Below, piece by piece: positions 20,951 to 64,000 of a stretch of 64,000 nucleotides of DNA; within the stretch, counting starts at the first letter, position 1, and each line of letters opens with the position of its first letter. The position numbers were made by a program, and so were the translations under genes. The notes under the pieces are model-generated. The model was not told the DNA's origin, did not search any database, and worked only from the letters and a program-made list of their open reading frames with translations. The stretch covers positions 266,025-330,024 of IMG/VR virus record IMGVR_UViG_3300042564_002819, one strand, 5' to 3'.

Positions 20951-21652
20951 ATGCAAAACATCGCAGTTAGCTGGGATATAATGTTTAATGAAGATACATC
21001 GAAAAATAAGAAAGAAGAAACAAAACTTATTACGTTTCATCACGATCCGTTAGCCTTTACTATAAAAATGGACAGTGACGGGATGAGTTTAGGAGAGATT
21101 CACACTGCACTTTTGCTTGCTAATACCACCGAAGTTGAACAGTGTTTTATCGATGAAGCAAGTAAAATACGTAGCTTTTTCAACCACTCGATCCTTCTAA
21201 GACGTCTTAAAAATGAATTTATTAGTTCATTTATGGAAATTGTTGAAGCACTTAACAACAATGTATACGTTGTAGATGAATCACACCTAAAAGCATTGGT
21301 AAAATTACCCGACTTTTTTAAAGAGTCAACCGAAACTAACATGCTGTTTGCAGAACACGTATCTTTAAGTATTAACCAACCATCTGGCGATTTGTCTGAT
21401 ACATGGAATTTTGTTAAGAAAATAAAAAGATCAAGCAAACACGAAAATCAATATCGTTATTATTTTACCAATGACAAAAAGCAGTTGCTTAGTTTTTTTG
21501 TAAATGTTTCGGACAGATCTTTTCCTGTATGGAATTATATTGCAAGCAGCGGGCCTGTTGGTATAAAAGGATATGCCTATCCTAATAAACAACCAGGGCA
21601 CGACTTTATTTTTTACAAGATGAGTAACTATGAATTTTATCCCGTCCGTTGA
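20951..21652 (+). CDS. Hypothetical protein
   Basis: Long ORF, SD AGGA. Confidence 0.65.
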   Translation: MQNIAVSWDIMFNEDTSKNKKEETKLITFHHDPLAFTIKMDSDGMSLGEIHTALLLANTTEVEQCFIDEASKIRSFFNHSILLRRLKNEFISSFMEIVEALNNNVYVVDESHLKALVKLPDFFKESTETNMLFAEHVSLSINQPSGDLSDTWNFVKKIKRSSKHENQYRYYFTNDKKQLLSFFVNVSDRSFPVWNYIASSGPVGIKGYAYPNKQPGHDFIFYKMSNYEFYPVR

Positions 21653-21872
21653 ACAACTTATAAGTTTAGCAAAAGAAGCAGAAATAACAGATCCGTTGAA
21701 CTGGGACTTGATCAAGGTTGACAAAGAAACAGTTTATAGTATTATGGCTTCAAATGTGCTAGAACAGTTTGCATCTTTAAAAGATGAAGAAAAATTAGTT
21801 ATAGCAATGGGAACTGTAACCAAGCTTTTGGTTGAAAATTTTTACTTACATATGAAAGAAAAACTAAAATGA
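21630..21872 (+). CDS. Hypothetical protein
   Basis: ORF chain. Confidence 0.6.
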   Translation: MNFIPSVEQLISLAKEAEITDPLNWDLIKVDKETVYSIMASNVLEQFASLKDEEKLVIAMGTVTKLLVENFYLHMKEKLK

Positions 21873-22276
21873 AAGTAGGATCTAGCCTTAGCCGGTGTGT
21901 GCGAGACATTTATGAAGGCACAGTTGACATTTATGATGTGCTAGTGATTGTTGCCCGTACAGATTTCGATCCCGAAGATGATCGTCATTGGAAATCGATC
22001 TGGAAAGGTTACGCTGGAGGCAACAGCACGGGCAGTCTGTATAGCCAGCCAGAATGGAGTGTTATTCCTGCAGAAGACGAATCTAAGGTTAGAGACATCT
22101 GTGTTCAACTTAAGAAGCTAGGCAAGTTGCATCAGCCTCGACAGTACGGTGCTCATCCTACAAGATTGAATCACTATTGGTATGATGTTATACTTACAGA
22201 TGACGTTGTAAATACAAATCCCGCAGCTAAGAAAGCATGGGATAATTATAAGACGATTGCTGGCCTTTCTAAATAA
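21869..22276 (+). CDS. Hypothetical protein
   Basis: ATGA overlap. Confidence 0.7.
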   Translation: MKVGSSLSRCVRDIYEGTVDIYDVLVIVARTDFDPEDDRHWKSIWKGYAGGNSTGSLYSQPEWSVIPAEDESKVRDICVQLKKLGKLHQPRQYGAHPTRLNHYWYDVILTDDVVNTNPAAKKAWDNYKTIAGLSK

Positions 22277-22374
22277 TTTTTTCAAAAAAGATAAATAAAA
22301 CTAGTTGACAGATAAATAAAGTTGTAGTAAGTTACTACTATAAGTTTAAAACAACATAAGAAAGACACATTGTA

Positions 22375-22467
22375 ATGAAACTCGCATATGAACATAAGTT
22401 TATGATTAGAAGCATTGAAAAATGCCGCGAGTATCGCTATGGCGTCTCGGAGGGTTCAGCTGTATGA
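22375..22467 (+). CDS. Putative attenuator leader peptide 1 (30 aa) for tRNA array 1
   Basis: MKLAYEHKFMIRSIEKCREYRYGVSEGSAV; contains GGAGGGTT (22449-22456) complementary to the terminator 5' arm. Confidence 0.7.
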   Translation: MKLAYEHKFMIRSIEKCREYRYGVSEGSAV

Positions 22468-22493
22468 TGTGATTAACACACATATAGATTTAC

Positions 22494-22526
22494 AAACCCT
22501 CCAGTAGCAATACTAGGAGGGTTTTT
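22494..22526 (+). terminator. Attenuator terminator 1
   Basis: AAACCCTCC-AGTAGCAATACT-A-GGAGGGTTTTT. Confidence 0.85.
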
Positions 22527-22727
22527 CATTATGTGCATATAGGAAACGAGGTCCTACTCAAAGCACTTTAAAAAACAGAGAAACGGGCGGGCTAGTGGAT
22601 GAAATGACCGGAGATAACGGCAGAGTAAAATACTAGCAGGTAATAGTAAAGCACACTCGTTCTGCCGGGCTGCGAACCCGGAATTGGACTGCATAGCGGA
22701 GAGTGTGTTTCACTATTACAAATAATT

Positions 22728-22814
22728 GGTCGGTGGCCCGGATGGTAAGGGGATGGACTGCAACTCCATAGCACTGCACGACAGTAATCAGTTCGATTCT
22801 GATACCGACCTCCA
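22728..22814 (+). tRNA. tRNA-Cys(GCA), long variable arm
   Basis: GGTCGGT/ACCGACC, ATGGA-CTGCAAC-TCCAT, U73, CCA. Confidence 0.85.
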
Positions 22815-22819
22815 CAATT

Positions 22820-22896
22820 GGTGCCGTAACTCAGTTGGTCAGAGTGCATCGCTCATAACGATGAAGTCGGTGGTTCAAATCCACCCGGCACCACCA
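22820..22896 (+). tRNA. tRNA-Met or Ile2 (CAT)
   Basis: CATCG-CTCATAA-CGATG; CCA. Confidence 0.9.
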
Positions 22897-22901
22897 AAAT
22901 T

Positions 22902-22978
22902 GGGACATTGGACTTCTTGGCGAAGGTCGCCGCCCTTTCAAGGCGGAGAAACGGGTTCGAAACCCGTATGTCCTACCA
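22902..22978 (+). tRNA. tRNA-Glu(TTC)
   Basis: CCGCC-CTTTCAA-GGCGG; CCA. Confidence 0.92.
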
Positions 22979-23019
22979 AAATAGATCAAGCCTAGTCGAT
23001 CTCGAAAATCACTAGGCCC

Positions 23020-23089
23020 GCTCCTGAGGATCAAGCCATCGGAAGGTTCGAGACTTCCTTTGCAGGGTCGTCACCTGCCAGGAGTAACA
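23020..23089 (+). ncRNA. Degenerate tRNA-like cloverleaf
   Basis: GCTCCTG/CAGGAGT stem, GGAAG-GTTCGAGA-CTTCC, GCAGG-GTCGTCA-CCTGC; no CCA. Confidence 0.45.
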
Positions 23090-23094
23090 TACAT

Positions 23095-23179
23095 GGGAGA
23101 GACGCCTCAAGGTGAGGCAGTGGATTGTAAATCCATCGCGGCAACGCACGGACGGGTTCGATTCCCTCCTCTCCCACCA
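23095..23179 (+). tRNA. tRNA-Tyr(GTA)
   Basis: GTGGA-TTGTAAA-TCCAT; variable arm; CCA. Confidence 0.92.
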
Positions 23180-23185
23180 AAATTA

Positions 23186-23261
23186 GGGTCTCTGGTATAG
23201 CTGGTGCGTACGGCTGCCTGAAGAGCAGTAGGACACGGTTCGATTCCGTGGGGACCCGCCA
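23186..23261 (+). tRNA. tRNA-Phe(GAA)
   Basis: GCTGC-CTGAAGA-GCAGT; CCA. Confidence 0.9.
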
Positions 23262-23296
23262 AGAATTATACTACCATAAACACGAAAGAAAATAAA

Positions 23297-23443
23297 ATGA
23301 AACTTGATCCGGAAGAAAGAATCTTCTTGACTGAAGAAGAATTGAAGCGTATACATGATGCTTGTGCTAATCCACCGGAACCAACAGACTATGTAAGACG
23401 CTATATTAACGCATATAGGAGAAAAAATGAAACGAAAACGTAA
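23297..23443 (+). CDS. 48-aa protein resembling the C-terminal half of DUF1778/TacA antitoxins
   Basis: MKLDPEERIFLTEEELKRIHDACANPPEPTDYVRRYINAYRRKNETKT (not in ORF track). Confidence 0.55.
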   Translation: MKLDPEERIFLTEEELKRIHDACANPPEPTDYVRRYINAYRRKNETKT

Positions 23444-23470
23444 CGCAGAAGATTATGACAAACGCAACAT

Positions 23471-23546
23471 GGACCGGTAGCTGAGGTGGTTTTAGCACCC
23501 GACTTTTAATCGGAGTACGTGGGTTCGAGTCCCACCCGGTCCACCA
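23471..23546 (+). tRNA. tRNA-Lys(TTT)
   Basis: CCGA-CTTTTAA-TCGG; CCA. Confidence 0.92.
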
Positions 23547-23665
23547 TAGTTTTGATGATACACTGACGCCGCGTGGTTACGGCTATACAACTAGGCTTAT
23601 CGCAACCTAATAACCATAGAGGGTTGAGTCGAGGTTGAGCAGTGTATCTTTTAAACTATGAATAT

Positions 23666-23741
23666 TGTTCCATAGCACAACTGGTTAGTGCAGGCGACTG
23701 ATAATCGTCAGATCTGAGTTCGAGTCTCGGTGGAACAACCA
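23666..23741 (+). tRNA. tRNA-Ile(GAT)
   Basis: GGCGA-CTGATAA-TCGTC; CCA. Confidence 0.92.
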
Positions 23742-23762
23742 AAATTAGTAGGAAGACAGCCA

Positions 23763-23942
23763 GTGGAAGAACAGGAATATTACGCACCGTGGGAATGGCA
23801 GCCGATCGAATTCATGCCTAACGGATGTAATGATGTTGTTGTAAGAGACCGTGAAGGCAACACTCGAGAATTGTGTTCATGCGATTACTGGTGGTTGTCA
23901 GCAGAAGATAAAAAGATTTACACATCTTTTAGATTTGTGTAA
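23763..23942 (+). CDS. Small hypothetical protein
   Basis: GTG start after the tRNA, SD AGGA. Confidence 0.45.
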   Translation: MEEQEYYAPWEWQPIEFMPNGCNDVVVRDREGNTRELCSCDYWWLSAEDKKIYTSFRFV

Positions 23943-23954
23943 TTTTAACATAAT

Positions 23955-24029
23955 GCCGTGCTTGGTGTAAGGGTAGCATACCGCACTGTGACTGCGTTGG
24001 AATAGGTTCAAATCCTATACACGGTACCA
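23955..24029 (+). tRNA. tRNA-His(GTG), no G-1
   Basis: CGCA-CTGTGAC-TGCG; G1:U72, A73. Confidence 0.88.
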
Positions 24030-24041
24030 ATACAAATTTAA

Positions 24042-24635
24042 TTATTGTACTTTTTTACTTAATACTCTGTATATGTCGTTATAGTTATTTTTATATTTCG
24101 ACTCATTGACAATTTCGTAGTTATATAATTGGTTTAATACCTTTAAACCATGTATTCCATCTTTAGTATCTAATTGATTGCATGTACCTATTACATGATC
24201 TGACAATGACAAACTATAATCAAATAGTTCTTCCCAAGTATTATTATATGGATACAGTTCTATAATTACCATTTGATGTTTTTTAGTGTAATTAAAAAAA
24301 TCACATTTCATAGCTGTGATGTTTGGGTAGTTGTGCATTGTGTTAAACAGTGCTAGGGTGTTTTGTTTTTTTAAAAACTTATCCGCACAAGTCATCTTAT
24401 GAAGATCACGCAACTCTTCGTATGTTTCAATATAGTGAAACGTATCTATTGCAGTAACATGTGTCTTTGGAAATGAACGACAAATTGCCGCAGCAACTCT
24501 GCCGCCAAATGTGCCAGCACACAAAACGTCACGTATATCATTGTTTGATATATGATCGCAAATATTAACTATTTCCTCGTATCCAGTCCAATTTGGAAAG
24601 TCCATTAGTATATTATATTTGCTTTTATATGACAT
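24042..24635 (-). CDS. Class I SAM-methyltransferase-like protein
   Basis: VLCAGTFGGR...VTAIDTF. Confidence 0.55.
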   Translation of the reverse strand: MSYKSKYNILMDFPNWTGYEEIVNICDHISNNDIRDVLCAGTFGGRVAAAICRSFPKTHVTAIDTFHYIETYEELRDLHKMTCADKFLKKQNTLALFNTMHNYPNITAMKCDFFNYTKKHQMVIIELYPYNNTWEELFDYSLSLSDHVIGTCNQLDTKDGIHGLKVLNQLYNYEIVNESKYKNNYNDIYRVLSKKVQ

Positions 24636-24691
24636 GTGATATTCCTTGTATAACTAAAACGTATTTATAAAACTTAAAATAAGAGAGATAA

Positions 24692-25123
24692 ATGATGAGC
24701 AAATATGACACATATAACAGATTAACCGAACCTGTAAAATCATTTGATGAACTACGCGGCCGTGCGTTAACTCGTGTTGAAAAAATCGGAAACGACGAAT
24801 TGCGTTTCTACTTAACAGATGAACATTATGTTCGTATGCATCACAATCAAGATTGTTGCGAATCAGTAACAATCGAGGATATTGTTGGTGATTTAGACGA
24901 TTTAGTCGGAACTCCGTTGCTGGTTGTCGAAGAACGTGTTTCTCGTAACGATGGCGGTACAGATGAACTGTATTGTGATTCATACACTTGGACATACTAC
25001 AGTTTTCGCACTATCAAAGGTAGTGTAGATATTCGTTGGTATGGAAGTAGCAATGGATACTATTCAGAAGGTGTTGACATTGACATTGTAACACCCGATG
25101 CAGAAAATCAAGTAGAAATCTAA
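24692..25123 (+). CDS. Conserved phage hypothetical protein
   Basis: HNQDCCESV...WTYY...RWYGSSNGYYSE. Confidence 0.75.
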   Translation: MMSKYDTYNRLTEPVKSFDELRGRALTRVEKIGNDELRFYLTDEHYVRMHHNQDCCESVTIEDIVGDLDDLVGTPLLVVEERVSRNDGGTDELYCDSYTWTYYSFRTIKGSVDIRWYGSSNGYYSEGVDIDIVTPDAENQVEI

Positions 25124-25192
25124 GGCCAAAGGCTTAGATCACATCAAGTTAAACTGTATTATTTCTATATACTGTCATTTTATAAATATTTT

Positions 25193-25705
25193 ATGAGGGT
25201 ATTACTAATAATAACGCTATTATTATCTCTTTCTGCTTGTGCTGATTTTAAGAAAATTCTTCGACCCGAACCTACACCAGAACCGATAAAAACAGCAATA
25301 GAAAAAGTAGGTTGGAACGAGCATCAAGACCGCAGAGAAATAAGAGAATTTACTGGTGTAGATCCAGTAAGTACACAATGGTGTGCTGCGTTTGTAAACG
25401 CAGTTCTTGAAGAAAATGGGTTACCTGGATCGGAGTTCTATAACGAAAATCCACTGTTAGCAAGAAGTTTTCTGTCCTGGGGTGTAGAGGTAGAAGAGCC
25501 CGAATACGGCGATATTGTAGTATTTGCTCGAGGCAATGAAGCTTGGAAGGGTCATGTTGGGTTTTATGTAACTTCGACATATTTAGAAGGTCAAAAACAC
25601 TACTTAGTTCTTGGCGGAAATCAAAACAACAGTGTCACATACAAAGCATATCCTACTCGTAGACTGCTTTCTGTAAGACGACTTACAACAGAAGATACTG
25701 AATAA
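25193..25705 (+). CDS. TIGR02594-type NlpC/P60 (CHAP-like) peptidoglycan hydrolase, lipoprotein
   Basis: Lipobox LSAC; WCAAFVN, ARSFLSWG, GDIVVF, GHVGF, LGGNQ; TATAAATA at 25181. Confidence 0.85.
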   Translation: MRVLLIITLLLSLSACADFKKILRPEPTPEPIKTAIEKVGWNEHQDRREIREFTGVDPVSTQWCAAFVNAVLEENGLPGSEFYNENPLLARSFLSWGVEVEEPEYGDIVVFARGNEAWKGHVGFYVTSTYLEGQKHYLVLGGNQNNSVTYKAYPTRRLLSVRRLTTEDTE

Positions 25706-25718
25706 AATTTAGTTTAAT

Positions 25719-25795
25719 GCTCTCGTAGCTCAATGGATTAGAGCGTCGGTCTACGAAACCGAAGGTTAGAGGTTCGAGTCCTCTCGAGAGTGCCA
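25719..25795 (+). tRNA. tRNA-Arg(ACG)
   Basis: TCGGT-CTACGAA-ACCGA; CCA. Confidence 0.93.
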
Positions 25796-25858
25796 AAATA
25801 CTAGTTGACACTGGCATAGACAAGTGTTATTGTGAGTGCAACAAGAAAGGAAATACAC

Positions 25859-26155
25859 ATGAATAAAATTCTAATTTCTGCACTTTTTGCCTTTGTTTCT
25901 ACTGCTGCTACTGCAAAAACAGTTTATTACCCCGAAGCTGCATGTAACGAAATTCTCAGCAGCGAATACAGCACTGGTGGGGGTGATTCCAGCTGGGAGA
26001 TGTACGAAATTCTTTGCCGTGACGCTAATGGAAAATACACTACCTTTGTTACCAGCTGGATGAGTGTTGCAGGGTTCTTTGGTATGGGTCGAGTTGCATA
26101 CGAAGAAACGATTGACCTTGTACCCTACAACGGTACTACATTGAAGGCTGAATAA
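25859..26155 (+). CDS. Secreted hypothetical protein
   Basis: Signal peptide; SD AAGGA; TTGACA upstream. Confidence 0.65.
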   Translation: MNKILISALFAFVSTAATAKTVYYPEAACNEILSSEYSTGGGDSSWEMYEILCRDANGKYTTFVTSWMSVAGFFGMGRVAYEETIDLVPYNGTTLKAE

Positions 26156-26156
26156 A

Positions 26157-26600
26157 ATGAAAATCGAATATCGTAAAGGCAACATGTTTGAAACTGACAT
26201 CCTGCATATTGCACATGGCTGCAATGCACAAGGTGTTATGGGATCTGGCGTTGCTAAGATTGTAAAAGAAGATTACTTTGATGCATATCGTTTCTACGCA
26301 GAACAGTACGACGAGCATGGACTTAAATTAGGAGATGTGCAGTTTGTTCCTGCAAACGGCAAAGTAATCATCAATGCTGTTACGCAGAATCTGTACGGCA
26401 AAGACGGTCGTCGTTTTGTTAATTACGAAGCAGTTGCAGAGTGCATGAGAACTATTAATAGTGTACTTAAGCAAAGTGGCGAAACTCATGTTGCTATGCC
26501 GCAAATTGGTGCCGGCCTTGGTGGCGGCGATTGGCGTGTGATTGAAGCAATCATTGAAAGCGAAATGACAGACATTCAACCTGTGGTGTATGTACTGTGA
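26157..26600 (+). CDS. Macrodomain (ADP-ribose binding/hydrolase) protein
   Basis: YRKGNMF, HGCNAQGVMGSGVA, MPQIGAGLGGGDW. Confidence 0.92.
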   Translation: MKIEYRKGNMFETDILHIAHGCNAQGVMGSGVAKIVKEDYFDAYRFYAEQYDEHGLKLGDVQFVPANGKVIINAVTQNLYGKDGRRFVNYEAVAECMRTINSVLKQSGETHVAMPQIGAGLGGGDWRVIEAIIESEMTDIQPVVYVL

Positions 26601-26771
26601 CAACACCCTTAGCAGATCAGAAGATATTCTCACTCAATGATCTCATTGAAATGGGTCTTATTACACGTAAACAGTTAGAAGATCACATCCGATACATGGA
26701 AGCAAAACAGTTAGTAAAAGAACTGTTTCCAGGAATGTTTTAAAAATAAAGAATAGGTAGCCGCGACTACC

Positions 26772-26903
26772 TTGGCTAGGAGACTATTTGCATTGTGCAT
26801 CGTGGGGCCTTTGTGTAGTAGACTGTTTCGTCTAACGGAGAGGACGCCGGTGGAGATCCGGAGATACAGGTTCGAGTCCTGTAGCAGTTTTGCTCCTAGC
26901 CAA
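26772..26903 (+). ncRNA. tRNA-like domain enclosed in a long stem (Y-RNA/YrlA-like candidate)
   Basis: TTGGCTAGGAG/CTCCTAGCCAA closing stem; inner cloverleaf with ACAGG-TTCGAGT-CCTGT. Confidence 0.5.
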
Positions 26904-26912
26904 AATAATTTA

Positions 26913-26988
26913 GCCTTCGTAGCTCAACTGGAAGAGCAAGGGATTTCTACTCCCTAGGTTGTGGGTTCGACTCCTGCCGGGGGCACCA
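26913..26988 (+). tRNA. tRNA-Arg(TCT)
   Basis: AGGGA-TTTCTAC-TCCCT; CCA. Confidence 0.92.
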
Positions 26989-27043
26989 AAAAAGCTGTTG
27001 ACACAGACTTGGCACTATGCTACAACAAGTTATTGAATAACAC

Positions 27044-27448
27044 ATGAGGAACACTGAGATGAAGACTGCTTACAAGAACCGTGACGGCGAATGGGTTGTG
27101 GCCGAGCAGATCAAGATGAGCCGGTATGACCTTGAAGGTTCGGTAGATTCGATTAAGGCTGCACTGGACGAGGTTCGCGACCGTGCTACCGCAATGGGTA
27201 TGGTGGGTGAAGGCACTGTTGACATCAGCCTGAACCGCGGCTTCTACTCGGACGACTACGAAATAGAAGTGGAATACTCCTTCACTCGGTATGAATACCC
27301 TGTGGAGATGGAGCGGCGTTTGGAGCGTGAGGCCAAGGATAAGGCTGCGGCTGCTGCCAAGCGTAAGGAAGCCGCCCAGAAGCGGAAACTCAAGAACGAT
27401 CCTGAGTATGTGGAGTTTGAACGGCTCCGGGCCAAGTTTGGTGGTTGA
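27044..27448 (+). CDS. Hypothetical protein (GC-richer, probably early)
   Basis: TTGACA promoter at ~26998; start may be ATG 27059. Confidence 0.7.
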   Translation: MRNTEMKTAYKNRDGEWVVAEQIKMSRYDLEGSVDSIKAALDEVRDRATAMGMVGEGTVDISLNRGFYSDDYEIEVEYSFTRYEYPVEMERRLEREAKDKAAAAAKRKEAAQKRKLKNDPEYVEFERLRAKFGG

Positions 27449-27504
27449 CAACACTCTCCTGCTGTGCTATAACAACAGCATAGGGCAACACGAGGAGAAA
27501 TCAA

Positions 27505-27852
27505 ATGCCTTGTAGAGTCAACGACGAAGACTGGAAACCGCGTAAAGAAACCCGCCACGGGATGGATATCGAATCTTTCGAAGCTACACTTTGCGGCGTC
27601 TTCACTGCTGCAGAGGAAGGCGCCTTTGCGCCTACGGTTGTTGGCGGAGTTGATGGCTTGCTGGATGTGATCGACTGGAAAGAAGCCGGAGTGAAACGCA
27701 AGACCGTTGAAGCATGGTGGAAGCGGCATAAGGCAGAAGATGCTGCCCGCCTTGCTCGCGAATCTGCTGAACGGCGTAAGGCTGAACTCAAGCGGATTGC
27801 GATCGGCAAACTCACTGCAGAAGAACTGGAAGTGTTGGGGATCAAACTCTAA
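27505..27852 (+). CDS. Hypothetical protein
   Basis: SD GAGGAG; TTGACA/TATAAC promoter. Confidence 0.75.
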   Translation: MPCRVNDEDWKPRKETRHGMDIESFEATLCGVFTAAEEGAFAPTVVGGVDGLLDVIDWKEAGVKRKTVEAWWKRHKAEDAARLARESAERRKAELKRIAIGKLTAEELEVLGIKL

Positions 27853-27923
27853 CACTTTCTGGTTGACATCCTACCTACACCGTGCTATGTATATTGTATA
27901 GGGCAACAAGAGGACAACCACAG

Positions 27924-28175
27924 ATGCCGAATCCTGCTACTGCTCCCCGTGACGAATTGAACGAGTTTACTCGCTCTGTATGGCTGCTTGGTAACAGCAA
28001 CTGGGGTAATCACGGTGTACGTCTTCGGAACGGGTTGATTGTCAAACCGATCTACAAGCCCGCAGAAGACGAGACCAGTGAAGATGCATTCTTCACCGAA
28101 GACTATGAATACTGCTGGAACCTGGACGGCACTTCGGTAACCCGCAGGGACTTTGATATGATGGAGATCGTGTGA
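27924..28175 (+). CDS. Hypothetical protein
   Basis: SD GAGGA; TTGACA upstream. Confidence 0.65.
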   Translation: MPNPATAPRDELNEFTRSVWLLGNSNWGNHGVRLRNGLIVKPIYKPAEDETSEDAFFTEDYEYCWNLDGTSVTRRDFDMMEIV

Positions 28176-28176
28176 T

Positions 28177-28584
28177 ATGATCAGAGACCTATTCGTTCCT
28201 GTGGCTGAACTGCTGTTCTGGTTCACCGGCGGAGAACTACTGCTGAATACCTGGTGGTTCTTTGTGTGGGTTGTTGGTGGTGCGTTCCTTGTAACCTTGC
28301 CGCTGTGGTTAGGTATGCGTCTGGCCAGACGTGGTAGTAACCTCAAGTGGATACCTGGCACACTCTTCCTAGTCGGCTTCTTCCCTGCCTTACTGCTGAT
28401 CACCAGCCCAGGCATCATCCAAGCCGACTTGATGGAAGAATGCCTACCCGTCCAGACCGTAACAGTGGATACCGCACAGGTCAAAGGTATTGAAGTTCGA
28501 GTTCGCCAGTGTCGCTTCAAGGCCAACTACTATGACAAAAATTATGGTGAATGGCAAGCCTGGGCGGTTGACCGGCACCAATAA
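28177..28584 (+). CDS. Membrane protein
   Basis: Two hydrophobic segments. Confidence 0.65.
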   Translation: MIRDLFVPVAELLFWFTGGELLLNTWWFFVWVVGGAFLVTLPLWLGMRLARRGSNLKWIPGTLFLVGFFPALLLITSPGIIQADLMEECLPVQTVTVDTAQVKGIEVRVRQCRFKANYYDKNYGEWQAWAVDRHQ

Positions 28585-28869
28585 CTGTATTATAAGCTGC
28601 ATAAGGAGAGACCGGCAACTTGTGTAGTGCATGTAGTGACGACTTGCGGATAACAGGTGGGATCGTGACATGTTGTAAATCTTTATGTAAGGGGTCGACA
28701 CTTTATATAGAGAGAACGCTGCATACGCTGTGGGACCTCGGCGTATCATTAAGGTGATCAAATCACGCAGGGGTAAAAGCCCTAATGAGGGGTCCTAGGA
28801 ATTAAAGGAAATACTGTGAGATATAGAAAGTTTTACGACGACTTCTAGGCTATAACCTAGGAGAATCAA

Positions 28870-29076
28870 ATGGCAAAATCACCTGTTTACGGCAGAGGCC
28901 GTAATCGTAAACATAGAGGGCACCGCGGCCCTGTTCACGCTGCGGCTGCTAACATCAATATGCGTGGCAAAAAAAGCAAACCTGACCACTGCTGGTGCTG
29001 TATTTGTATTGACATGCGTGAAGATATCTTGTATCGTATACACAAGAAGGAGATGAGAGATGAAAGAGACACGTAA
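28870..29076 (+). CDS. Small basic Cys-containing protein
   Basis: SD AGGAGA; CWCCIC. Confidence 0.6.
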   Translation: MAKSPVYGRGRNRKHRGHRGPVHAAAANINMRGKKSKPDHCWCCICIDMREDILYRIHKKEMRDERDT

Positions 29077-29584
29077 GTATCTAGTATTTTTAGACATTGA
29101 CGGCGTTTTTACTAGCTCTCGTGTTCACTTTGCACACGCTGCTGCTTATGAAATGTGGCACAGATTTGATCCTGTAGCAGTTGATTTTATGAACAAGATT
29201 CATGACAGATATCCTGTGGAGTTTGTGATCATGAGTACTTGGAAGGACAACCTTCGCAGTGACGATAACAACGTAAAACACTGGGTTCATGCTGCGTTTG
29301 GCAACAGTGGCTTTCGTGGGCAACTTGCTACACCTTGGAAAACAGATCCTGACAACGTCATCTGGCAGCGTAAAGGTGCAAATGATCGTGCCTACGAAGT
29401 AAAAGAATATTTAGAACTATACGCAACAGATATAAAAGATTACATTTTGTTTGATGATAATCGCTATCAATTCAAAGAAGTGCTAGGCGTTAATCGCCTA
29501 GTTCATACAGATCACGAAAATGGTCTGTTATACAAGCATATGCTAAATGCTCATAGTTTGATGGGACAGTGGCACGAGCGGTGA
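29060..29584 (+). CDS. HAD-superfamily protein (Swiss-Army-knife RNA-repair-like)
   Basis: VFLDIDGV, IMSTW, ILFDD. Confidence 0.8.
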   Translation: MKETRKYLVFLDIDGVFTSSRVHFAHAAAYEMWHRFDPVAVDFMNKIHDRYPVEFVIMSTWKDNLRSDDNNVKHWVHAAFGNSGFRGQLATPWKTDPDNVIWQRKGANDRAYEVKEYLELYATDIKDYILFDDNRYQFKEVLGVNRLVHTDHENGLLYKHMLNAHSLMGQWHER

Positions 29585-29616
29585 CATCGCTCGGAATAAT
29601 AACAAAGGAAACAGAG

Positions 29617-29826
29617 ATGACTAAAGAACAAGTTTTAAAATCGCTACCCACGTTTAAATTGCTGGCATGGGGAGAAACCGCAGAAACCAGCGGCAATGGA
29701 AAATATGTGCATTTTGATGCAAAAGAATCTAGTACACGTATCTTTACTATTGAAGCAATTCTTGCAGAACTAGATAAGCGTGACGACAATCCTAACCGAG
29801 ATTCTAGAAAAAAGAAGAAAAAATGA
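29617..29826 (+). CDS. Hypothetical protein
   Basis: SD AAGGA. Confidence 0.5.
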   Translation: MTKEQVLKSLPTFKLLAWGETAETSGNGKYVHFDAKESSTRIFTIEAILAELDKRDDNPNRDSRKKKKK

Positions 29827-29909
29827 TTAAGTTGCATATTGCTAATTTGGTTAATATTTTGTTATCCAAATTGCAAGAGATATTGTATAATAGATTAATA
29901 AATTAAAGT

Positions 29910-30482
29910 ATGTGTAAGTTAGTTTTTGTTTATAGTTCTATGAATTCCGGTAAAAGCCTAGCTGTTCTTACCAAAAATTATATGTTAAAAGAAAAAGGTT
30001 TTAAGACTGTGCTCATGAAGCCGGCAGTTGATACTAGGACTGCGGCAACTGTGGCTACACGCTTAGGCTTAGAAGAGCCCTGTGTTGTACTAGGAACAAC
30101 TGATTTGCCTAGTCATACTATACTAAAATCAGCACACGACAAGCCTGATTTTATTATTGTTGACGAAGCACAGTTTTTAACAAGCGAACAAGTTTGGGAC
30201 CTAGCTGGCTTAGTCGACAACTGGGGCATAAACGTGTATTGCTATGGTCTACGACTTAACTGGCAAGGAGAGTTTTTTACAGGATCGGAAGCACTGATGA
30301 AAATTGCTGATGTGCTAGAACCAATCGAAAACTTCTGTCAAATAAATAAAGGAGCACTAGCATTCTTTCATATTAAAAAAGCAGGTGGCGATAATCCTGT
30401 AGAAGTTGGAATGGAAGACATGTATGACACTGCGTCTAGAAAAGCCTGGAAGCAGTGGTATGACACAAAAAGGCCTCTGTAG
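29910..30482 (+). CDS. tdk: Thymidine kinase
   Basis: YSSMNSGKS, KPAVDTR, IIVDEAQFLT, YGLR. Confidence 0.92.
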   Translation: MCKLVFVYSSMNSGKSLAVLTKNYMLKEKGFKTVLMKPAVDTRTAATVATRLGLEEPCVVLGTTDLPSHTILKSAHDKPDFIIVDEAQFLTSEQVWDLAGLVDNWGINVYCYGLRLNWQGEFFTGSEALMKIADVLEPIENFCQINKGALAFFHIKKAGGDNPVEVGMEDMYDTASRKAWKQWYDTKRPL

Positions 30483-30548
30483 CTCAATGGATAGAGCAGC
30501 AGACTTCGAATCTGTAGGTTGGGCGTTCGAGTCGCTCCAGGGGTACCA
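30473..30548 (+). tRNA. tRNA-Arg(TCG)
   Basis: GCAGA-CTTCGAA-TCTGT; CCA; overlaps tdk stop. Confidence 0.9.
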
Positions 30549-30610
30549 AAATAACACTTGATCTCTTACTTTGCATAGTGTAAGCTGTAAGTATAGTAAA
30601 GGAGAATCAA

Positions 30611-30790
30611 ATGTGGAAACTTTATATTATGGAATCTGAACGCGGTTGGGGTCAACGAGTTGACGAAATACTAAAGTTCGACACGTATGAAGAGGCCGAT
30701 AAATACAAAAAAGAATTTAACAGTAAAAACAATCTTCCTGAAGTGCCTGATTGGTACATGTATGCAGATGGACCTGTTAAAGTAGATTAA
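30611..30790 (+). CDS. Small hypothetical protein (59 aa)
   Basis: SD AGGAGA; MWKLYIMESERGWGQRVDE...VPDWYMYA. Confidence 0.7.
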   Translation: MWKLYIMESERGWGQRVDEILKFDTYEEADKYKKEFNSKNNLPEVPDWYMYADGPVKVD

Positions 30791-30874
30791 GTCGCTGTGG
30801 TGTAATGGTAGCCACGACAGCTTGAGGTGCTGTTGCCGCAAGGCGTGGGAGTTCGAATCTCCCCAGCGACACCA
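30791..30874 (+). tRNA. tRNA-Leu(GAG)
   Basis: ACAGC-TTGAGGT-GCTGT; variable arm; CCA. Confidence 0.92.
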
Positions 30875-30890
30875 ATTTTAAGGAATAAAA

Positions 30891-31541
30891 ATGGCTCTAA
30901 CTAGATTAATTGGCGACATTCATGGAATGGTAAATGACTACAAGGCCTATTCTATTGGGGATTTTAGTGGTCCTACAATTCAACTTGGCGACTTTGGAGT
31001 TGGGTTCGGTCAAAATGATTACTGGTATGAAAGCATTAATTCTTTTCATAAAGCAGGCAACCATCGGTTTATTCGTGGTAATCATGATAATCCTGCTCTG
31101 TGCAAAACTATGGACGGATACATTACAGACGGTAGCATTGAGAATGATGTAATGTTTATTGGTGGTGCTTGGAGCATCGATAATCCTAATGCACCTCCGG
31201 GTTGGTATAAGCGTACAAAGGACTATGACTGGTGGGAGGAAGAAGAACTCAGCAGTGACGAACTTGAACGTATGATTGATATCTATGCTGTAGTTAAACC
31301 ACGTGTGATGATTACACATGATTGTCCTAACATTATCAGCAGACAGATGTTTTTCAACAGTGGATTTCTAAAAGGTCCTGAATACCCCAACCGTACAAGT
31401 GCTGCGTTTACTCGTATGTTGGATATTCATCAACCCGACGAATGGTACTTTGGACACTGGCATTTTACAATGCAATACAAATACGGACGCACACTATTTC
31501 ACTGTCTTGGTGAACTAGATTACGTAGACGTAGAACTTTAA
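30891..31541 (+). CDS. Calcineurin-like metallophosphoesterase
   Basis: GDIHG, LGDFG, RGNHD, THDCP, FGHWH. Confidence 0.9.
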   Translation: MALTRLIGDIHGMVNDYKAYSIGDFSGPTIQLGDFGVGFGQNDYWYESINSFHKAGNHRFIRGNHDNPALCKTMDGYITDGSIENDVMFIGGAWSIDNPNAPPGWYKRTKDYDWWEEEELSSDELERMIDIYAVVKPRVMITHDCPNIISRQMFFNSGFLKGPEYPNRTSAAFTRMLDIHQPDEWYFGHWHFTMQYKYGRTLFHCLGELDYVDVEL

Positions 31542-55104: not shown

Positions 55105-55194
55105 GGAGAGTTGGTTGAGCGGCCGATAACACTCGTCTACTAAACGAGCAGGGGGTAATGCCCCTCGTGGGTTCGAATCCCACACTCTCCGCCA
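55105..55194 (+). tRNA. tRNA-Ser(ACT), unusual A34
   Basis: CTCGT-CTACTAA-ACGAG; long variable arm, G73, CCA. Confidence 0.88.
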
Positions 55195-58590: not shown

Positions 58591-58666
58591 GTCGCGTTAG
58601 CAAAAGGTTAATGCGTGTCCTGTGCAAAGGACAAGGACGGTGGTTAAACTCCCCGACGCGACTCCA
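58591..58666 (+). tRNA. Atypical tRNA, Cys(GCA)-like, 8-nt anticodon loop
   Basis: GTCGCGT/ACGCGAC, U73, CCA; TGTCC-TGTGCAAA-GGACA; bulged T-stem. Confidence 0.55.
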
Positions 58667-63249: not shown

Positions 63250-64000
63250 TAAGATGGGCGGCTTAGCGTCCACGTAAGGGTAAGTGCGGTAACGCACCCA
63301 AAGGCAGGTTTCCTATAAACTGCCGCCAGCAATGGTCCACCTAAGCAAGCCTGAACTAAGGTTGACTCGGTTTAACCCGAAAGCAACCTCCGTCCTTAGG
63401 CGGGCGGTAGGCAGTAAGTTAGAGTTGTAGTCCGAAAGGATAGGCACAGAGCCGGTCGGTGAGTGCTAAGAGGCTGTGGTGGCTGAACTGCAACATACCA
63501 AACTAACGAATGCTGAAGGTTAACAGGTAGCTACACTGTCTGAGCCCGCAAGCAAAGGCATGGTAGCATCACAAGAGTGGAAGGGTTAGGCCCCGGATAC
63601 TTGAAGTGACGTTGAGTAGCTCGCAAGGCAAAAGACAGTCGGTGTGTTGTATACTGTATCTAACAAGGTATGGTGCAACTGGGACAGCACATCGAAGTAG
63701 GTTCGCAATATTGCATAACGGTAATGCAATCGTCTTATGAAACGATGGATTGTAGGTTCAACTCCTACTATTGAAACAAAAGCGAAAGACTGTCCCGGTA
63801 CGTTGTGAAAGGTGGTTAATGCCACACTCGCAAGAGAATGTGGTCTACGGATGCTCGCAAGGCTGATGTAGTTGTTCGGAAAGATAGCGTAAGGGTTTAG
63901 CGACTCTGAACTGCTCGCAAGGCAGACGAAGGATAGAAGGACGAGTAGCAACGTGCGACGAGAGAAACGCCACTCTCCAAAAAAGGCACCACTGGGAGAT
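63250..64000 (+). ncRNA. GOLLD-like giant ncRNA (probably truncated by window end)
   Basis: No credible ORF; many GNRA hairpins; GAGTAGCTCGCAAGGCAAAAG, GGTGTGTTGTA...GCAGCACATC-like and AAAGCGAAAGACTGTC blocks resemble GOLLD as recalled; next to tRNA array. Confidence 0.7.

Follow-up and report, generated by a model that had tools for sequence, protein, structure and literature searches.

A small gene among phage tRNA genes

The window analysed here, a stretch of 64,000 nucleotides, forms the end of a virus record of 330,024 bp, whose completeness is estimated at ~93%. The record belongs to a T4-like lake-water phage, whose rIIA gene resembles T4-like rIIA, and 30 tRNA genes were found in the window by ARAGORN. 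Between tRNA-Phe and tRNA-Lys lies a gene for a protein of 48 aa, which we call mini-TacA. The original prediction had described a 48-aa reading frame between these two tRNA genes, and we recovered it exactly at 23297-23443 on the + strand, with the quoted peptide inside it. The features at and near the gene are the following:

23186-23261, + strand: tRNA-Phe (GAA), which precedes mini-TacA by 35 nt (ARAGORN, Rfam)
23284-23288, + strand: weak SD-like GAAAG, 8 nt 5' of the mini-TacA ATG, in an A-rich leader (read from the sequence)
23297-23443, + strand: mini-TacA gene, 48 aa plus stop (ORF listing), translated as MKLDPEERIFLTEEELKRIHDACANPPEPTDYVRRYINAYRRKNETKT
23417-23421, + strand: AGGAG, a strong SD of ORF2
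23427-23480, + strand: ORF2, 17 codons, MKRKRNAEDYDKRNMDR, beginning in the last mini-TacA codons and reaching its stop inside tRNA-Lys
23471-23546, + strand: tRNA-Lys (UUU), the downstream neighbour, 27 nt past the mini-TacA stop (ARAGORN, Rfam)
26157-26600, + strand: Macro-domain protein in the same tRNA array (PF01661, 39 bits; phrog_335)

Relatives of mini-TacA start at AAGGA-type sites or overlap with an upstream ORF. Relatives with readable DNA all lie in phage tRNA arrays, the exception being the 909-bp contig L012, in which no tRNA was found. Across the contexts compared, the gene stands upstream of tRNA-Lys (within ~120 nt) or overlaps it in 10-11 of 12. In the window and in contigs L003-L005, L015 and L019-L023, tRNA-Lys follows by ~15-120 nt or overlaps the 3' end of the gene, and in L021-L023 the last mini-TacA codons are inside tRNA-Lys; in L013 and L014, a tRNA-Lys(CUU) is placed 15 nt upstream instead. 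The upstream neighbour varies and can be tRNA-Phe, tRNA-Tyr, tRNA-Lys, or a small ORF that itself follows tRNA-His, -Glu, -Ile or -Phe. Apart from tRNA-Lys, the order of tRNAs around the gene differs between contexts. Since these contexts are not phylogenetically independent, the linkage to tRNA-Lys may partly mirror shared ancestry.

The second reading frame, ORF2, is conserved in relatives as a very basic peptide of 44-48 aa, MKRKRQKVPKERNVFVAAALFRKAGAHTKTNKAKRKREKQ... (L003:3131-3269, L020:1305-1443 and L019:3137-3283), of which the window carries a truncated version of 17 aa and L015 one cut to 15 aa. In L003-L005 and L020, ORF2 meets no stop codon ahead of tRNA-Lys, so that cleavage at the 5' end of the tRNA would yield an mRNA lacking a stop. 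Searches with ORF2 gave nothing meaningful in Pfam and nothing in PHROGs. An ArfA-like identity was considered for ORF2 and rejected, as PF03889 had no match in the three records searched.

Signals for transcription were sought around the gene. No terminator-like site was found on the + strand in 21500-25000, promoter-like sites in the same region occurred at chance level only, and Rfam returned tRNAs and no other element in 22000-31500. The earlier idea that an attenuator co-induces the gene with the tRNAs was not borne out by these searches. With no promoter or terminator signal and with tRNAs as the sole Rfam elements, co-transcription of mini-TacA with the tRNAs is plausible. The mini-TacA stretch is contained in 24 sequencing runs, mostly DNA metagenomes of lake water; the four RNA-labelled runs cover it only via contigs of relatives, and three of these four are flagged as probably DNA.

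Other features of the arrays were noted. At 23095-23175 (+), ARAGORN missed a tRNA that Rfam scored as tRNA-Sec-like (37 bits); its anticodon reads GTA (Tyr), its variable arm is long, and tRNA-Tyr occupies the equivalent position in related arrays. The 115-nt spacer between tRNA-Glu and tRNA-Tyr (22979-23094, +) contains the T-arm-like motif GGTTCGAGAC and could represent a decayed tRNA or some other structured element. ARAGORN also reported tRNA-like genes with abnormal anticodon loops at 58591-58666 and 63704-63777 (+; a 2-base 'gc' and a 4-base 'tatg') and a tRNA-Ser(ACT) at 55105-55194. Endonuclease genes of the T7 endonuclease I family and of the HNH type are dispersed in related tRNA arrays (L013:1590-2282, L014:1047-1739, L020:139-711 and L021:244-852), where they may drive rearrangement. 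Macro genes recur 1-2 kb downstream of mini-TacA in L015 and L021-L023, and L023 additionally has an ADP-ribosylglycohydrolase. The Macro-domain gene of the window may be a second orphan antitoxin-like counter-defence gene, of DarG type.

Homology to the toxin-binding half of DUF1778 antitoxins

Close relatives of mini-TacA were sought among 5.8 billion proteins by a word-indexed search, which returned 11 (46-65 aa, 64-83% identity); an exhaustive run of phmmer over 1.84 billion representatives returned 7 further, more distant small relatives. After a profile search the family comprised ~60 clusters of 46-92 aa, on contigs of up to 330 kb. Its holders are metagenomes throughout, mostly from lake water and some from river and wastewater. 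PHROGs has no family for mini-TacA, and among 50,697 GenBank phage records we found no close relatives, only weak matches at the level of the hook, the toxin-wrapping tail described below.

The sole Pfam match of mini-TacA is PF08681 (TacA1), with an E-value of 0.01 and 16.2 bits over profile positions 43-78 of 80, which falls below the curated cut-off of 21 bits. In a six-frame translation of the whole 330-kb record, mini-TacA is the only candidate for this family. The same weak match is present in 8 of 12 close relatives. Above the cut-off are P0118, P0123, P0124, P0127 and P0128 (21.2-30.9 bits), which share 41-52% identity with the mini-TacA of the window and match the C-terminal part of the profile only, from position 36 or 43 to 80.

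When the 17-member mini-TacA family alignment was compared by hhalign with 16 canonical antitoxins, residues 3-43 paired with antitoxin residues 54-94 of 96 (probability 93.6%, E-value 2.2e-7). In a re-run the real score was 37.1, as compared with a mean of 9.6 (sd 2.1, maximum 17.7) for 200 column shuffles, none of which reached the real score, and 12.6 for the reversed alignment. The joint alignment is collinear and almost gap-free, running from ER(I/V)xL(T/S) through NPPxP(T/N) to the last helix. Among PDB sequences, five of the six phmmer matches are DUF1778 antitoxins, the best being 6gtq_C, a 46-residue C-terminal fragment of AtaR (E-value 0.0014).

The family member P0015, compared by tblastn with 7.3 Gb of plasmids, gave weak matches in 23 records, and in 18 of the 20 records listed the match falls on an annotated DUF1778 gene. 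The five that were examined more closely all directly precede a gene that occupies the toxin position, and four of these neighbours are annotated as GNAT. The 7-mer NPPEPTD of mini-TacA is identical in Rhizobium DUF1778 antitoxins that adjoin GNAT genes, and a weak match of mini-TacA in phage Cyrano falls on an antitoxin that is paired with KacT. With P0123 as the query, a full-length 99-aa antitoxin of an Alcanivoracaceae genome was found with 47% identity over 34 aa; it adjoins a 166-aa ORF in the toxin position.

On these comparisons mini-TacA is homologous to the C-terminal, toxin-neutralising half of DUF1778 (TacA/AtaR/KacA) antitoxins. The C-terminal DUF1778-like segment claimed in the original prediction was confirmed by the Pfam match, by hhalign and by PDB matches that are mostly DUF1778 antitoxins. 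In the hhalign shuffles the similarity exceeds chance; against the DUF1778 profile five relatives pass the cut-off, and the copy in the window stays at 16.2 of the 21 bits.

The AlphaFold2 model of mini-TacA, built from the family alignment, has a mean pLDDT of 90 and consists of helices at residues 13-24 and 31-45 with the NPPEPT loop between them. In a Foldseek search of the PDB with this model, all seven matches are antitoxin tails from toxin complexes. They include the AtaR C-terminus with AtaT (6gtr, 6gtq), AtaR (6ajm, 6gts), KacA (5zgn) and the C-terminal peptide of TacA3 with TacT3 (7ak9), with TM-scores of 0.41-0.52, rmsd of 2.2-4.1 A over 30-38 columns, and E-values of 0.7-4 that are individually not significant. 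The predicted fold matches the toxin-bound tails of AtaR, KacA and TacA3. By alignment with KacA, the elements of the hook are placed as follows:

23315-23329, + strand: equivalent of strand betaB, residues 7-11 (ERIFL), KacA aa 52-56 (phmmer alignment to 5zgn_A)
23330-23371, + strand: equivalent of helix alphaC, residues 12-25, TEEELKRIHDACAN, KacA aa 57-70 (alignment and AlphaFold2)
23372-23383, + strand: Pro-rich linker, residues 26-29 (PPEP), KacA 71-PPAP-74 (alignment)
23384-23431, + strand: equivalent of helix alphaD, residues 30-45, TDYVRRYINAYRRKNE, KacA aa 75-86, with which residues 30-41 align (AlphaFold2 and alignment)

In KacA, strand betaB pairs with beta3 of the toxin, and the hook is the high-affinity mode of toxin binding (PMC6698736). 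Residues L16, I19, A22 and C23 of mini-TacA align with W61, V64, A67 and I68, which contact the toxin in KacA (these contacts and the element boundaries are from PMC6698736), and N25 together with the PPEP linker forms the NPPxP motif of the family. According to the entry titles of 6gtq, 6gtr and 7ak9, isolated C-terminal antitoxin peptides bind their own toxins. A complex prediction for mini-TacA with TACT1_SALT1 (Swiss-Prot) gave a score of 0.00 with a partner pLDDT of only 37-42, and speaks neither for nor against binding.

The other half of a canonical antitoxin is missing. The protein has 48 aa, its profile match starts at about position 43 of 80 and tRNA-Phe is 35 nt away, in agreement with the earlier statement that the N-terminal RHH part is absent; without this domain mini-TacA would be unable to bind DNA or to dimerise through RHH. 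A cognate toxin is likewise lacking, and the orphan status proposed for the gene holds: PF13508 has no match in the phage record (~93% complete), no gene for a TacT-like GNAT toxin was found there, and the only PF00583 match in the record (15-16.5 bits) lies 44 kb from mini-TacA, in a 311-aa protein that also carries a KTSC domain. With neither an RHH domain nor a TacT-like toxin, mini-TacA is a homologous sub-domain and not a canonical type II antitoxin.

The 311-aa protein is encoded outside the window, at 244834-245769 of the record (L006:1342-2277), has its KTSC domain at the C-terminus (24 bits), and is the sole acetyltransferase-like candidate of the phage record. A bicistronic operon of antitoxin and GNAT toxin was ruled out at this locus, the gene downstream of mini-TacA being tRNA-Lys. 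We also looked for a phage peptidyl-tRNA hydrolase, an enzyme that would detoxify acetyl-aminoacyl-tRNA, and did not find one.

Proposed function and alternative readings

A codon comparison between the window and three related viral contigs gave pN of 0.13-0.20 and pS of 0.56-0.77 for mini-TacA, and dN/dS of ~0.10-0.15 for the same contigs. Purifying selection acts on mini-TacA, which is a genuine gene. In its 5' half the synonymous sites are saturated (pS 0.89-1.09, pN ~0.2), whereas in the 3' half of comparable pairs pS is down to 0.16-0.39. This low synonymous divergence of the 3' half, together with the conserved ETKT tail, is probably due to the overlap with ORF2.

Toxins of the GNAT class acetylate aminoacyl-tRNAs and are neutralised by the tail of their antitoxin (PMC6698736; PMC9177977; PMC8138530). 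As mini-TacA has the tail only and lacks both the DNA-binding head and a toxin gene, it would most likely disarm host toxins that acetylate tRNAs, and would do so during infection. We lean slightly towards reading mini-TacA as an orphan, hook-only antitoxin that would neutralise host GNAT toxins, as suggested by homology, the predicted fold and the analogy with other phage genes. The anti-defence mimicry put forward in the original prediction is plausible on this reading. The phage would make mini-TacA together with the tRNAs, from the transcript of the array, during infection, and the trigger would be a host shut-off that lets labile host antitoxins decay. The protein would then bind host toxins of the TacT, AtaT or KacT type, which N-acetylate aminoacyl-tRNAs, in the manner of the cognate tail, by adding a strand to the toxin sheet and covering a hydrophobic surface. 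Such binding would block the binding of acetyl-CoA and/or the dimerisation of the toxin, and would keep host and phage tRNAs usable. What we infer in this mechanism is that toxins are bound, when the gene is expressed, that the trigger is host shut-off, and that GNAT toxins have a defence role.

There are observations that count against this reading. The copy in the window lies below the Pfam cut-off, and single E-values in the PDB and Foldseek comparisons are weak (0.0014-4). As a rule, antitoxins of type II pairs are specific for their own toxin (PMC12301738). In addition, mini-TacA has Y32 at the position of R77 in KacA, a residue needed for neutralisation, since KacT is not neutralised by the alanine mutant (PMC6698736). 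P0015 has R at this position, and one canonical antitoxin, that of Alcanivoracaceae, also has Y.

A further possibility, rather unlikely in our view, is that the TacA hook was repurposed for another target, such as another GNAT-fold enzyme or a tRNA-handling factor, in a role tied to tRNA-Lys. It would fit with the linkage between mini-TacA and tRNA-Lys, which is kept while the upstream neighbour varies, although shared ancestry of the arrays can account for this as well. The main clade has no copy in 185,579 species-representative cellular genomes, and its alphaD has diverged (TDYVRRYINAYRKK) and is invariant among close relatives; on the other hand, mini-TacA has lost neither any element of the hook nor the hydrophobic contact positions, and members of the family grade smoothly into canonical DUF1778 tails. 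The phage does have one weak GNAT-like protein, the 311-aa protein with the KTSC domain, but it is encoded 44 kb away and reaches 15 bits only.

It is improbable, in our estimate, that the locus works chiefly in cis, with translation of ORF1 (mini-TacA) and ORF2 tuning the processing or expression of tRNA-Lys and the peptide itself being of minor importance. The arrangement of the frames would suit such an element, as ORF2 begins inside ORF1 with a strong SD, ORF2 of relatives enters tRNA-Lys without a prior stop, ORF1 of L021-L023 overlaps the tRNA, and synonymous change is lowered in the 3' half of mini-TacA. However, amino acids are conserved even where synonymous sites of the 5' half are saturated (pS ~0.9-1.1, pN ~0.2), conservation falls on the residues that make up a protein-binding hook, and the AlphaFold2 model of the protein is confident.

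We consider it very unlikely that the gene is the decaying remnant of a toxin-antitoxin module that the phage lineage once captured and that has no present function. mini-TacA is shorter than the canonical antitoxins of 90-100 aa, has no toxin partner and, in the copy of the window, has a weak SD, all of which decay could explain; yet the ORF is intact across ~60 clusters with 35-83% identity and a common start (MKLDPEE...), dN/dS is ~0.1, and an identical copy is present on 9 contigs. Least credible of all, to the point of being nearly negligible, is a chance or convergent resemblance caused by a short Pro-rich motif in a protein of no DUF1778 ancestry. In its favour are the small size of the protein and E-values of no better than 0.001-0.01 for single sequences; against it, 41 columns align collinearly, none of the 200 shuffles approaches the real score, relatives exceed the Pfam cut-off, and weak matches in plasmids, phages and the PDB are almost exclusively DUF1778 proteins.

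The reading of mini-TacA as an orphan antitoxin can be widened into a joint one, which we regard as improbable when taken as a whole. GNAT toxin-antitoxin modules would be genuine anti-phage systems, large T4-like phages would answer them with hook-only inhibitors built from the antitoxin tail, and ORF2 and tRNA-Lys would belong to the same cassette. The toxins would strike aminoacyl-tRNAs, phage-encoded ones included, and Lys-tRNA may be the relevant target; the inhibitor, the basic ORF2 peptide and tRNA-Lys would form a fixed cassette in the lineage, in which what becomes of the upstream mini-mRNAs would depend on the 5' maturation of the tRNA.

The role of DUF1778-GNAT modules (TacAT, AtaRT, KacAT) is debated and has been framed mostly around persistence, and in the literature we found no report of such modules defending against phage. 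A phage-borne copy of the hook alone, conserved and under selection, would argue indirectly but strongly that phages encounter GNAT toxins during infection, which would imply that acetylation of aminoacyl-tRNAs is an anti-phage barrier. If the reading is true, mini-TacA would also represent a natural minimal inhibitor of the GNAT toxin class, of 48 residues, and would place a counter-measure made of protein in the emerging picture of phage tRNA arrays as counter-defence loci.

Comparison with known systems

With the DUF1778/TacA-AtaR-KacA antitoxins (PF08681), mini-TacA shares the C-terminal strand, the helix, the NPPxP linker and the second helix, which together wrap the toxin; the two are collinear over ~41 residues, and the hydrophobic contact positions are retained. 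In contrast to these antitoxins, mini-TacA lacks an RHH domain and a neighbouring GNAT toxin, is encoded by a phage and lies in a tRNA array. It also differs in having Y for K/R at the position of KacA R77 and in its tail, RRYINAYRRKNETKT, which overlaps a second reading frame. The crystallised peptides of AtaR (6gtq, 6gtr) and TacA3 (7ak9) comprise the same part of the protein in 36-46 residues, are the top sequence and fold matches of mini-TacA, and demonstrate that the hook suffices for binding to the toxin. These peptides are laboratory truncations, whereas mini-TacA is a naturally free-standing gene. Our literature search turned up no work on a DUF1778 protein that consists of the hook only. 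A "DUF1778 domain-containing protein" is listed by proteomics among the putative anti-TA genes of two Klebsiella myoviruses (PMC10100988).

Related hooks are present in two other phages:

L026:1312-1620, Escherichia phage RB43: RB43ORF099w (P0129), 102 aa, hypothetical, phrog_7517
L016:1480-2247, Shewanella phage SXP01 (PV593634.1, 158846-159613): unannotated ORF of 255 aa

RB43ORF099w has a Cys-rich N-terminal part followed by a C-terminal TacA-like hook, EIIKNPPKPTKRLRELMSR (PF08681, 20.5 bits). In the SXP01 ORF the first 45 residues form a TacA-like hook, ILLSDESMKVVEDLIANPPTPSAKLREL (PF08681, 17.4 bits), which is followed by ~200 residues with no family match. Like mini-TacA, both have a hook and no RHH domain, and both are below the Pfam cut-off. 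The hook of RB43 is fused to the Cys-rich N-terminal domain and that of SXP01 to a C-terminal extension, whereas mini-TacA is the hook alone; both genes lie outside tRNA arrays in the stretches examined, and mini-TacA lies inside one. Weak tblastn matches suggest homologues of RB43ORF099w in the Citrobacter phages Miller, CfP1 and IME-CF2. As a cultured phage with a related hook, RB43 offers a system in which the idea behind mini-TacA is testable.

Among phage orphan antitoxins, the classic functional analogue is Dmd of phage T4, which counters RnlA/LsoA and is not homologous to the antitoxins that it replaces. T4-like phages also carry orphan DarG-like, antitoxin-type counter-defence genes against DarTG1 (PMC11825919). 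What Dmd and the DarG-like genes share with mini-TacA is that each is a gene of a T4-like phage of lytic type with no cognate toxin, the role of mini-TacA as a stand-in or mimic for a host antitoxin in infected cells being putative. The DarG-like proteins are enzymes that reverse a modification, whereas mini-TacA, which goes back to a sub-domain of an antitoxin, would act by stoichiometric binding.
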